DNA of 64,000 bases from Schizochytrium sp. TIO01 (taxonomy: Eukaryota; Protista; Bigyra: Labyrinthulomycetes): NCBI GenBank assembly GCA_004764695.1, contig SMSO01000031.1, positions 38,436 through 102,435 of the forward strand, given 5' to 3'. Positions 23,817 to 41,146 of this stretch are shown piece after piece. The notes beneath the pieces are model-generated. The model ran no database searches, was not told the origin of the DNA, and worked only from the letters and a program-made list of their open reading frames with translations. Position numbers and translations under genes: made by a program. The first letter of the stretch is position 1, and each line of letters begins with the position of its first letter.

Positions 23817-26800
23817 TTAAATTTCTTTAAAGGCGTTTTGAATCCTTTCACTCAATTTCTCGACTTCATCTACGTTGCCACCACCCGTCATGTTAACATA
23901 AAGAGGATTAATTCCCCACGAACCGCCAAAAACGCCTTCCCACTTGCTTGTATCAGTCATAGCTTGCTCAAGTACAACTGGAACCATGCGAACTCGGGAC
24001 TTTCTCTTTACCAGGTACTCAAACTCATAACGACAGTAATCTTCCCTCGCGGGGTTAGAGTTTACCTTCTCCATGTATTCCCGTGTAACAAAGACAACGC
24101 CCACTTTGGAATCATCGATACCCTGAGTCATTATACGAGTAATCTCGCCGTGCTGCACCTCGTTCCGATCGAGCCAACATGATATACCATGATTGTTCTG
24201 CAACTCATCACTTACACGGCATACAAGGTTATGCACTTTCTTATCTTCGCCCCAAGCGTGTGACAAAAAGACGTCATACATCTTCTCTCGTCGTGCTGTT
24301 ACCTTCGATTCCAACTCTTCGGCCTCATCTCTGTTGGCAAAAAACAACCGAAAGGATGACAGCCTCAATGTTTTCTTGCGCCCAACAGACGGGACCTTAC
24401 CGCGTCGTGCCTTTGCTAGAACACTAATAGAGGCACAACTTTCATCATTTGTCGTACCGTCACAGCTCAAAAACAACCTTGGATTCAATTTCTGTTTCAT
24501 GAAAGCTTCATCTATCGATTGCAGTTGAGTGTGCAGTAGTTGTACAATGTTTGTTATTGGCCTCTGTAAATCGCTGCTTTCGACTTCTTCATCATTTTCT
24601 AAATACATGATAATACGACGTCGAGTATCATCCGGAACCAGGAGGACAGAAATGCCATCAAATATGATGCTTGCCGCATTTGCGTGCACCTGTAGAACCT
24701 CAACGAGCCCTGCAGGGAATTTTGACACCATACTCGCAATAAAGCGTTGAAATACCCCTTTGGGGAAAAAGTCAAACTCGATATACACTAAAGCGGCGCC
24801 TTCAAATTCTGAAAAGAGATCCTCGAGCTCATCCTCAGAGATAGGTTTTAACAAACTGGGAATTAACAAAGCTTCCTCTCCGTCCAAGTCTCCTATCCAT
24901 GGGCTTCTGCTCGCCAGAAGCATTTCTGTCATGAGTTCAGAAAAGTACTTCACAAAAAAAGGTTGACCCCATAACATTGACAGAAATAATTGACTTGCAA
25001 CACCGCGTTCCTTCCAAGTCTCTAAGTCAGCATACCAATCTGTTAGTATCTCAACCTCTGTAACTGCTTCTTTCATTTTTTTCACATGCGCCTTCATATG
25101 CATTGGATCACAAATTACTCGTGACAAGTTGTCAAGCAGCCATTGAGGTTGCAGGATCACATACTTTGCAAGATCAGGCGTAGAGGTGAGATGCACAATT
25201 ACCCCCAGCTCGTGCATGAACTTCAACATCTCCGTAGCGTCATCTTTTGAAATCCCACAGAAACTTGTTGCAAGCTCATACACAGCATCGAGCTCCATGT
25301 AGTCTCTGTTGATCATAAACATACGATCCAAGCAGAGAGACCATCGCAATGGTACCTCCTTCTTTACATATTTTACCTTTGCAGCCGTAGTCATGAGAAT
25401 CTCACGAAGAAGCTCACAACGAAATGGGTCCCTTCGTTCGATGTTGTCTAGAGGATAAAAATCCAGATTCTCTGTTTTGTTTCTCTCATGATGGAGGCCT
25501 TTGGCCTGAGCTAGAAGCACTCCCAACTCAGTGTTAACGAGATTTAGATCTTCCTTAGTATCCTGCAGAGCGTCGAGATATGTACCCACAAGAATAACCT
25601 TGGCTCCATTCGCATGTAAGCGTATCGAGTCTAGCCAGAATCGAATCGTGTTTAATGCCGTCTCGCTGTCCTCCATTAACGCATAGTCAGAACAGTCCTG
25701 GAAATTATCTTTTCCAATCACTTCTCGCATATCGAAAACGATCACATATACCCCGTAATTAGTTAGGAAAAGGTGATGCAAAGCGTAGAAAACCTCCTGT
25801 CCACCGTAATCCCAAATGGAGAAACTGACATCTTCCTCTACTTTTGTACGTCCAGCCTCTTCAAATTGGAATTTCACATCAGCCCTAAAAACTCTTGCCA
25901 CCTCCTCCGTCTCGACCTTGAGCTCAGGTTTCAAGGTTTTATCCGTCCGAGGTCCAGAAAGTCTGGCTAGTGATTTGCGAATACTTTGGTGTAGAAGGCT
26001 CTTTCGATCCTTACGTATCTGGAATTTTACAATAGCATCGTTGAGATCAGCAGAGTGAATGCCTAATGGGTCCTCTTTCCAGTCCTTCGCGCGAATCACC
26101 TTGAGGTCAACACCAATAGTTGAGTCATGCTCCGCTACGAATGATTGACCGAGTAGAGTGCGAATAGTTGATGTTTTACCAGCGCCTCCCTTTCCAACTA
26201 CCATCAACTTCGCTCGGCCCCATCGTACCTTTTCATCTTTTGAGAAAGCGTTTAATGCAGACCTTGTGAACTCGTCAACTATATCCTTGGCCAGCTTTAA
26301 GCGGTCACCAATATGATCTTTCACGTCTTCAGGGATATTTAAATCAAGACTGCCAAGGTATAAAACTCTGATTTGTTAGTTTGAATAATTTCGAAACTTC
26401 ATTACATTTCACTCAAGCTTTAGATTAAATTTCTTTAATTTGTACAAACTCACCTTATTACCCGGAGAACATGATTTTCATCCAACGCAGCAGCCACTGC
26501 CTTGACGCCCTCGTCGCCGATCTGGTTGCTTTGAAGACTGTCGATTTGATTGAATGATGGCAAGCAATACATTACACGTTACATATTACAATAGATGCAC
26601 GCATGCATGCATGGACGTGAGTGATCTCGGTTGGTTTTCAGGATTTATCTTTGTTGTGTTGTCATTTTGCTCTTTCTTCGATGGATGTATACTCACTCAA
26701 ACAGACAACTTATCCATCCATCCATCAAACAAACAAACAAACAAACAAACAAACAAACAAGCGATTGCATAAACTTGCAGAACAACACCGACCCACCCAC

Positions 26801-39800: not shown

Positions 39801-41146
39801 ATTCAAGTCAATCTAAAACCTTCTACAGACAAGTTGCGAATCTGGGCAAAGTGGTGTCTCAGCACGTGATCCGTATCACTGGTGCTTTTGTGGACATGGC
39901 ACATGGAGTACCGCGTGGTTGTATTATTATGCCTTTCTACGAGCAAGGTGACCTTGCCAAGTGGATTGAGCGTCATCCTAACGAAGGCAAAGCAGCGCGC
40001 GACCGACTTGCTATGGGTCTGCTTATCGGTGTGGCGGATTTACATACCCACGGCATTGTGCATTGTGACATCAAACCAGAAAACATTTTCCTCACAAGCA
40101 ACGGGACACCATTGATCGGTGACTTTGACGGCATCAAGGTTGCAGACTACACTGCAACGTACACATCACTCCAGGCAACGCCACGGTACGTTGCCCCCGA
40201 GTTGCAGAATGGGCCTGTAGATAGGTTTGAAACAGCGATGGACATGTACTCTGTGGGCATCAGCTTAAAGGAGCTGTATCCTACTGAGCGAACCGCTGCA
40301 ATGCAGAAACTTATCGATGCTCTTACAGCAACAGACCCTGGCCAGCGTCCCACCGCTCGCCAAGCACTCCAACATGAAGCTTTTGGAGCTCCTAAGATCC
40401 CTGTCAAGATGTGCCTAGTATGCATGGAGGAGCATCTGCTTTCCGAGGGCACGAGCTGCGAGGAGGGAGACTTCCTTTGCAGAGACTGTATCGAATCTTC
40501 AGTAGAAGCGGCGGCCCAGCCACTTGCTAACGTCAGAGTGGATGCTGATGGAACGATGGCATGCATGAAAACTGAATGTAGTGGAAGGATATCAGGTCAA
40601 GAAATCACCCGCCTTGCACCAACTGCTTTGAATCATCTTTTGTTGATTGCGAAGATGAAGGCAGAAAATGAAGCAGCAGTTTGGGCGGAGAAAGAGATCC
40701 AAAGGCGCATAGCACGAGTTCCACGTGCAGGTGAACAGAACAGTGGCGCAGAGCATCATTTACTACATATTCAAGAGAAGATCTTGAGCACATGTTGTCC
40801 GAACTGTAACGCTTATGTGGACGAATTCGAGGATTGCTGTGCTATAGAGTGTATTAATCGTGCTTGCGGTCATCACTATTGTGCTTGGTGTCTTGAGTAT
40901 AGTTCCCAGGATACAGATAAATGTCATGCTCATGTGAGAACCTGTTCAAGAAGACTTGGGCAAGATCTACATTTCGCTGATTCATTTGAGCAGGTTCGTG
41001 AGGCTTGGCGGCTGCTACGCGCAGAACGTCTGCGCGAGTATTGGAATGCGAATATTAGAGACATAAATCTTCAGCATGCTCTCGAACAGCTACTTGTGCC
41101 TCTGCTAACACCAGACATCGTTGGCTCAGGATTTAAACTGTGTTAA
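33824..41146 (+). CDS. LRR - helical region - protein kinase - RING1 - Rcat (RBR-like E3) protein (spliced, 13 exons, ~1263 aa)
   Basis: Hand-spliced exons: 33824-33876 (ATG, phase 2); LRR exons 34062-34145, 34475-34558, 34900-34983, 35313-35396, 35732-35815, 36151-36234, 36569-36652, 37003-37098 (96 nt), 37434-37517, 37855-37938; linker 38111-38308; terminal exon 38458-41146, in frame with the 907-aa ORF. Kinase motifs VLKEF, HCDIKPEN, GDFDG, YVAPE, DMYSVG; RING CLVC..C..CRDC..C..C; Rcat CPNC..DCCAIEC..CGHHYCAWC. Confidence 0.87.
34062..37938 (+). repeat. Tandem array of ~415-430-bp [LRR exon + conserved intron] modules
   Basis: Ten exons; introns gtacgtttgtgg...ttatactcacag are near-identical apart from a (CAG)n(AAG)n tract; exon consensus LxxNxIGxEGAKAVAKALEGCKNLQxLx. 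Confidence 0.95.

Follow-up and report, generated by a model that had tools for sequence, protein, structure and literature searches.

The two satellite-like repeat arrays in a 64,000-nt stretch of the thraustochytrid Schizochytrium sp. TIO01 (GenBank assembly GCA_004764695.1, contig SMSO01000031.1, positions 38,436 to 102,435 of the forward strand; hereafter the window, in whose coordinates all positions are given) are arrays of exons. They belong to two divergent leucine-rich repeat (LRR) receptor-like genes: a minus-strand gene with the domain order LRR12-Roc-COR-TIR and a plus-strand gene with the order LRR10-helical-kinase-RING1-Rcat, which lacks the IBR domain of RBR ubiquitin ligases. 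We consider it quite probable that the locus is one canonical chromosome-end block of the Aurantiochytrium limacinum type, carrying receptor-like genes built from exon cassettes, and that the head-to-head placement of the two genes is incidental to the layout of this block.

Tandem Repeats Finder places the arrays at 26726-31388 (periods 409-453) and 34073-37903 (period 419). Each repeat unit contains an 84-nt open segment, which encodes one ribonuclease inhibitor (RI)-type LRR of 28 amino acids per exon. A pattern scan by script returned 12 exons on the minus strand and nine on the plus strand, and reading of the sequence added the segment at 34062-34145, which brings the plus array to ten. 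The acceptors read cag/TCTT in both arrays, and the donors read GTAAGTTG in the minus array and GTACGTTTG in the plus array. All 22 LRR exons are in phase 2, with one base first and the two bases of a split codon last; none contains a stop codon, and 21 are exactly 84 nt long, the exception being an exon of 96 nt at 37003-37098. Since every LRR exon is symmetric in phase, any subset of them keeps the reading frame. Exon 1 of both genes ends in the same phase as the LRR exons, the last LRR exon of each gene runs in phase into a long open frame, and the exon lengths add up to 3606 nt (1201 aa) in the minus gene and 3792 nt (1263 aa) in the plus gene, both divisible by three. The start codons at 32015 (minus strand) and 33824 (plus strand) are divergent and lie 1808 nt apart. 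The two gene models are composed as follows.

32015-31951, minus strand: exon 1 of the minus gene, 65 nt, with its ATG at 32015; an 805-nt intron comes next
31145-31062, 30736-30653, 30283-30200 and 29886-29803, minus strand: LRR exons 1-4, 84 nt each
29477-29394, 29072-28989, 28666-28583 and 28257-28174, minus strand: LRR exons 5-8, 84 nt each
27844-27761, 27391-27308, 26950-26867 and 26537-26454, minus strand: LRR exons 9-12, 84 nt each
26454-31145, minus strand: the whole minus LRR array, of Group 0 type (see below), introns 313-369 nt
23817-26349, minus strand: terminal exon of the minus gene, acceptor cag at 26350, stop codon 23819-23817, open frame of 835+ aa
33824-33876, plus strand: exon 1 of the plus gene, 53 nt, found again at 25 genomic places
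34062-34145, 34475-34558, 34900-34983 and 35313-35396, plus strand: LRR exons 1-4, 84 nt each
35732-35815, 36151-36234 and 36569-36652, plus strand: LRR exons 5-7, 84 nt each
37003-37098 (96 nt), 37434-37517 and 37855-37938, plus strand: LRR exons 8-10, the others 84 nt
34062-37938, plus strand: the whole plus LRR array, of Group 5 type (see below), introns 329-350 nt
38111-38308, plus strand: 198-nt linker exon, in phase 2 on either side
38458-41146, plus strand: terminal exon of the plus gene, encoding the helical region, the kinase, RING1, a helical linker and an Rcat-like finger

The first exon of the minus gene, together with its upstream DNA, is found again at 30 genomic places, and the intron that follows it is largely an (AAGC)129 microsatellite (31417-31931, read as (GCTT)n, about 515 nt). 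Every intron of the minus array carries CAAA and ATCC microsatellites of differing length, and because these vary the units of this array spread over 409-453 bp. The 96-nt exon at 37003-37098 owes its length to a 12-nt in-frame G-rich insert, which adds a run of Gly where the repeat begins, in its hypervariable part.

Transcript evidence concerns the plus gene family. Read contigs were compared with 37380-41300 of the plus gene; they came from runs X1, X3 and X5, which were taken to be RNA by guess. The 149-nt GT..AG intron at 38309-38457 is removed exactly as predicted in X1 and X3 contigs, which join 38308 to 38458, and in X1 and X5 contigs, as joints and as loose ends, the end of an LRR exon is connected straight to the TCTT start of the next. 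In run X3 intron depth is near zero and the exons are covered. A public transcript of 1240 aa labelled complete (MMETSP0960, with LRR_6 and Pkinase) is 99% identical to the terminal exon of an internal kinase-RBR paralogue and 100% identical to three consecutive exons of 81-84 nt in that paralogue, where the introns measure about 85 nt. The plus gene family is spliced as modelled.

Domain searches were run exon by exon, and at the junctions the split codons alone were read by script. Single LRR exons match Pfam LRR_6 with E-values of 3e-4 to 9e-3, exon residues 1-15 falling on profile positions 10-24, and from this offset it follows that the intron divides the repeat inside its beta-strand part. 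In the minus gene, the terminal exon encodes the end of the LRR region followed by Roc, COR and TIR. The Pfam matches to Roc (1.7e-18) and COR-A (5.3e-11) are both past their cut-offs and that to COR-B is weak (0.0068); COR comes immediately after the Roc GTPase, which is the ROCO arrangement. The nucleotide-binding motifs are intact, with the P-loop GKGGAGKT and DYGG in the place of DxxG, and the Roc domain is a predicted GTP-binding switch. The TIR signature is present (TIR_2 1.4e-12, TIR 4.4e-6), the best solved relative being a bacterial TIR protein (7uxr, E 5e-4). Within it, the Glu of the motif C-R-x-E-F is shared by 11 of the 12 homologues aligned; judged from motif position it would correspond to the catalytic Glu, and we regard it as a candidate catalytic residue.

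The terminal exon of the plus gene contains a eukaryotic protein kinase domain (Pfam Pkinase, 1.2e-29) that has the catalytic Lys and Asp and shows the motifs VLK, HCDIKPEN and APE. It deviates from the canonical form in having DFD where DFG is expected and in lacking the canonical Gly-rich loop. The helical region of about 420 aa gives no Pfam family above noise and no Atlas match. The last 268 aa, searched as a single sequence, return nothing significant by Pfam or phmmer, and their relationship to RBR ligases is recognised from a profile of homologues together with a fold search. In a library of 1.84 billion proteins they have 1156 homologues, and the profile of 45 of these finds RNF216 (2.9e-7), parkin (1.3e-6) and ARIH2 (1.7e-5) in the PDB, as well as ARIH1 and cullin-9; Pfam IBR_1 is recognised in 11 of the 45 C-terminal family members. 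An AlphaFold2 model of this domain has a pLDDT of 91, and its top Foldseek matches are all RBR ligases, RNF216 first (1.5e-4).

Residues 33-127 of the last 268 align to RING1 of RNF216 (E 2.9e-7) and also to RING1 of parkin, and the eight zinc ligands can be assigned as C25, C28, C40, D44, C47, C50, C75 and C80. No IBR is present between RING1 (C25-C80) and the Rcat-like finger (C153-C184), as a Cys/His cluster is absent there: residues 81-151 have no Cys and only scattered His, and the model shows long helices. The Rcat-like stretch C153..C184 by itself is weak against parkin Rcat (E 0.49), and the match to ARIH2 covers residues 294-396 of that protein at 1.7e-5; Cys166 is aligned to the catalytic Cys of parkin and is nearly invariant in the family. 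The C-terminus of the plus gene is thus a putative RBR-like ubiquitin ligase of RING1-Rcat type, as judged from homologue profiles and a predicted fold.

Within each array the introns are 94-97% identical, as against 81% for the exons, and within the exons the ends (62-72%) differ far more than the middle (87-88%). When the two arrays are compared with each other, exon identity is 55% and the introns show no significant similarity (best E 0.16), which agrees with independent amplification of the minus and plus arrays. LRR variation is focused at residues 2, 3, 5 and 8 and at the split codon, which are the x positions of LxxLxLxxNxI. At codons 2, 3, 5 and 8, the proportion of nonsynonymous differences (pN) is 0.51-0.54 and that of synonymous differences (pS) 0.54-0.65, compared with 0.007-0.05 and 0.02-0.12 at codons 9-24 and a divergence of 0.03-0.06 in the introns. 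Arrays of paralogues have as few as 2 and as many as about 20 exons. With symmetric phase in 22 of 22 exons and variable residues within a fixed scaffold, the arrays have the features of one-LRR-per-exon shuffling.

The original prediction had read the satellites as cryptic exon arrays with starts at ATG 32015 and ATG 33824, about 1.8 kb apart, had named the domains of both genes and had described homologous 28-aa RI-type LRR exons in the same phase, unrelated introns and hypervariable LRR positions. The open phase-2 exons with consensus splice sites, the in-frame exon sums, the domain matches and the measured distance bear it out on all these points, and the contigs and the public transcript do so for splicing of the 84-nt exons in the plus family. 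What it missed is a 5S rRNA gene, which sits in the 1.8-kb spacer separating both receptor start codons.

32484-32602, plus strand: 5S rRNA gene (Rfam RF00001, 96.5 bits, E 1e-19), with a T-run after the gene
45009-45127, plus strand: second 5S rRNA gene (Rfam, 96.5 bits), downstream of a neighbouring RING1-Rcat gene

These two genes, together with a ribosomal DNA (rDNA) unit, give the locus its layout. At A. limacinum chromosome ends, transcription of the rDNA runs toward the telomere and that of a 5S gene away from it (bioRxiv 10.1101/2023.06.15.545109). Repeats named LORE-TEARS lie between these genes, Group 0, whose units measure about 385 bp, between 18S and 5S, and Group 5, whose units measure about 421 bp, between two 5S genes; without GenBank similarity, they were called non-coding spacers, and a role in end maintenance was proposed (bioRxiv 10.1101/2023.06.15.545109). 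The assembly analysed here differs from the Aurantiochytrium limacinum assembly of that preprint. In the window, Rfam places a unit of small subunit (SSU), 5.8S and large subunit (LSU) rRNA at 17165-22024 on the minus strand, beginning 1.8 kb past the ROCO-TIR stop, and the order along the window is rDNA, array, 5S, array, 5S. The minus array, with units of 409-453 bp between the SSU (22024) and the 5S gene (32484), has the size and position of Group 0, and the plus array, whose 419-bp units are bounded by the 5S genes at 32484 and 45009, has those of Group 5. Unit sizes, copy numbers, positions and the opposite transcription of rDNA and 5S all correspond to LORE-TEARS of these two groups; what differs from their description is that the arrays here are exons and introns of protein-coding genes and not spacers.

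A subtelomeric setting had also been predicted. The match of the layout to A. limacinum chromosome ends agrees with this, but the contig start (L035, G000:C30:1-400), 38 kb upstream of the window, has no telomere repeat, so that the assignment comes from layout alone. That contig start carries instead a tRNA-like sequence, present twice on the reverse strand. Several blocks of the subtelomere type are also seen deep within multi-megabase contigs, such as those of C30, at 5.47 and 8.3 Mb, and of C34, at 2.8-3.0 Mb; the assembly may join chromosomes, or the blocks may not be exclusively terminal.

Copies of the two genes and of the spacer between them are numerous in the genome. Terminal exons of the ROCO-TIR type are present in full length no fewer than 13 times, with 70-91% identity, and the count rises to 17 if incomplete or more distant copies are included; for kinase-RBR, the number of full-length terminal exons is 45 or more, at 80-91%. 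The stretch 31950-33880, which comprises the spacer and the two first exons, is found again in its entirety nine times or more, with 78-91% identity, and several composite copies add to these. Half copies are also numerous: some combine the 5S gene with exon 1 of the ROCO type, others with exon 1 of the kinase gene. By combined coordinates, the genome has at least 16 modules in which the two first exons diverge. A kinase-RBR terminal exon lies 2.2-9 kb downstream on the kinase side in 15 of the 16, and Roc-COR-TIR is on the other side in a single one, the window locus, which is also the only paired copy among the 17 of ROCO type.

Upstream flanks were read for two ROCO-TIR paralogues, six divergent modules and one internal paralogue. 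The five partner copies read (L030-L034) have an LRR array of the same type, with 3 to 20 exons and with introns homologous at 77-85%, and the Roc-COR-TIR exon is absent from all of them. The arrays of L032 and L033 end with an in-phase splice from the final LRR exon to a short tail exon, open over about 100 aa. L030 and L031 have a comparable open frame behind their arrays, and the corresponding stretch of L034 reads N. These tail frames of L030-L033 (G000 C18, C8, C7 and C13), about 100-120 aa long (e.g. MDEFTDEMCEELELNN...), diverge in sequence between copies and stay open; they have no family match. Farther on, L030, L032, L033 and L034 are homologous to the flank of the rDNA, window 23569-17476.

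As for the ROCO-TIR paralogues, the two nearest (91% identity, with 10 and 2 LRR exons) have no kinase gene within 16-19 kb upstream. Homology of most of them to the window stops at 23878, 60 nt before the stop, and this break would mark a mosaic junction. Upstream of the paralogue with two exons (L027-L028, G000:C36:4964780-4984779), open frames of 1031 aa and 925 aa resemble retroelement polyprotein genes, with a Cys-His knuckle motif in one. The internal kinase-RBR paralogue, in turn, has no opposite-strand LRR exon within about 10 kb.

These observations can be brought together in one account. The 'spacer repeats' would be cassettes of one 84-nt exon and one intron, each cassette being part of an intracellular receptor-like gene from one of two large families. 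Recombination would homogenise whole cassettes, which would account for introns that are 94-97% alike, and a few codons on the predicted beta-strand face of the LRR would stay very different. Such a pattern fits predicted ligand-binding sensors that would diversify through unequal crossing-over and gene conversion. As output, the Roc-COR switch of the minus gene may drive a TIR domain in which a candidate catalytic Glu is retained, and the plus gene may act through its kinase and a ubiquitin ligase of RING1-Rcat type. Opposite the kinase-E3 gene there would usually be an LRR array of the same type without Roc-COR-TIR, ending, where it is readable, in a short tail exon. Because the sampled canonical blocks carry a short tail in this slot, the locus appears to be a mosaic, in which the 3' part of the partner would have been swapped by mosaic exchange for a Roc-COR-TIR terminal exon. 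The ROCO-TIR occupant seems to be a one-off among the modules found, and the head-to-head placement would result from the fixed layout of the block.

The original prediction had taken the ROCO-TIR and kinase-RBR genes for a sensor pair, and a true functional pair would consist of a co-regulated sensor and an executor or helper expressed from a shared bidirectional region, by analogy with RPS4/RRS1. The divergent start codons only 1.8 kb apart, the variable LRR sensors in both genes with their complementary outputs, and the divergence of a Group-0-type LRR gene from a kinase-RBR gene at 16 or more modules all speak for such a pair, but the combination with Roc-COR-TIR is unique (1/16 modules, 1/17 ROCO copies) and pairing is not kept in paralogous loci. 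Lack of pairing in homologous loci had been named beforehand as the observation on which this claim would fall. The nearest ROCO-TIR paralogues stand without a kinase gene over the distance read and the internal kinase-RBR paralogue without an LRR partner, for each ROCO-TIR copy there are about three of kinase-RBR, and the spacer contains a 5S gene, transcribed by RNA polymerase III. Moreover, non-coding DNA is 86-91% identical among modules, for which reason their recurrence is attributed to duplication or homogenisation of blocks. A functional pair therefore seems improbable to us. Somewhat less improbable, though still unlikely, is that the canonical block itself is a selected two-gene receptor unit, of which the window locus would be an effector-swapped variant: a divergent variable LRR protein and an LRR-kinase-E3 protein would be arranged around a 5S gene, the site flanking the rDNA would generate diversity and swaps of terminal exons would make new combinations. 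The 16 divergent modules, 15 of them with an identifiable kinase-RBR terminal exon, fit this idea, as do partner arrays that keep their 84-nt exons open and in two cases clearly splice to an open tail exon. Against this, the high identity of the non-coding DNA points to recent duplication or concerted evolution, which would preserve the layout without selection; many kinase-RBR copies have the 5S-to-kinase half only, many Group-0-type first exons occur alone, and the internal kinase-RBR paralogue is unpaired. The view of the preprint, by which the arrays are structural subtelomeric spacers for the maintenance of chromosome ends or rDNA, their coding potential being incidental or decayed, can appeal to the fixed positions relative to rDNA and 5S genes and to the missing GenBank similarity (bioRxiv 10.1101/2023.06.15.545109). 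It is very hard to reconcile with 22 of 22 open exons in a single phase with consensus splice sites, which lead into long open terminal exons whose domain matches are strong, are found spliced in contigs and in a public transcript, and vary at specific codons among uniform introns, and we give it hardly any credence.

The reading that we favour, a canonical chromosome-end block with exon-cassette genes, has several points against it as well. The minus gene is a predicted model: among public proteins its nearest match is 56% identical, and a search of public protein sets for short, almost identical ROCO-TIR fragments returned none. For the plus gene, the contigs of the X runs pool paralogues, and the RNA nature of these runs was guessed. 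The module lists are lower bounds, with 40 of 164 candidates scored, and parts of L029 and L034 read N. At the variable codons pN/pS is 0.8-0.9 and none is above 1, as these sites are saturated; the pattern, as far as sequence comparison can tell, is one of homogenised cassettes with protected variable spots and not of a formal dN/dS above 1. Finally, ligand sensing, an immune or non-self role, the enzymatic activities and the mode of diversification enter this reading as predictions.

The window has two further features. The rDNA unit (17165-22024, minus strand) has a shortened LSU, in which model positions of about 2620-3401 are compressed into some 90 nt; its length is about 4.9 kb, the published mean being 5.55 kb, and very AT-rich DNA follows (GC 0.26 at 16001-18000). 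The unit probably represents an rDNA copy that has been truncated. An open frame of 742 aa at 42584-44812 (plus strand) is 29% identical in its last 200 aa to the RING1-Rcat end of the kinase gene; the scan found neither an LRR array nor a kinase match in it.

Relatives of both proteins exist in other protists. Hondaea fermentalgiana has LRR_6-Roc-COR-TIR proteins of 42-45% identity and WD40-Roc-COR-TIR proteins too, and Mucochytrium quahogii has a Roc-COR-TIR protein of 31% identity. The kinase-RBR module is likewise found behind ankyrin repeats (Hondaea) or WD40 repeats, and in a dinoflagellate protein. Since both effector modules recur behind other repeats, they are reused with different repeat sensors. 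These labyrinthulomycete relatives, which share the effector modules, have been named automatically ('LRRK2', 'NOD2').

The closest known parallel to the exon arrays comes from brown algae, where LRR-ROCO genes of Ectocarpus and Saccharina have 72-nt phase-2 exons with one LRR per exon and exon shuffling, and where the literature mentions TIR after ROCO for a red-algal TPR-ROCO-TIR only (PMC3341825, PMC11378527). Single-LRR symmetric phase-2 exons, the order LRR-Roc-COR, variable residues in a fixed scaffold, LRR-only genes made from the same exons and the stramenopile lineage are common to both. In contrast, the thraustochytrid exons have 84 nt (28-aa RI-type) rather than 72 nt, TIR follows COR, near-identical cassettes of exon plus intron are located between rDNA and 5S genes, and a second family links such arrays to a kinase and an RBR-like ligase. 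The plant pairs RPS4/RRS1 and RGA4/RGA5 resemble the locus in having two divergent repeat-sensor genes, one with TIR. Unlike in these pairs, NB-ARC is absent, an integrated decoy is not evident, a 5S gene is in the spacer and the pairing is not kept among paralogues. What the plus gene has in common with RBR ligases (RNF216, parkin, ARIH1/2, HOIL-1) is RING1 and a finger resembling Rcat, in which one Cys lines up with the catalytic Cys, but a helical linker of about 70 aa replaces IBR, the consensus RING1 His is Asp, an extra C-H-H-C site comes after Rcat, and the whole is fused after a kinase.

Since the paired-receptor reading does not hold, co-regulation and co-immunoprecipitation effort can be spared at this locus. 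The published 'enigmatic spacers' at nearly every chromosome end would instead be exon cassettes of expressed LRR receptor-like genes, which would extend exon-cassette receptor diversification to a second stramenopile lineage beyond the brown algae, with a different repeat type and different effectors. The chromosome ends would thus be a reservoir of dozens of variable sensors with TIR, kinase and ubiquitin-ligase outputs, in a host that also carries persistent mirusviruses.

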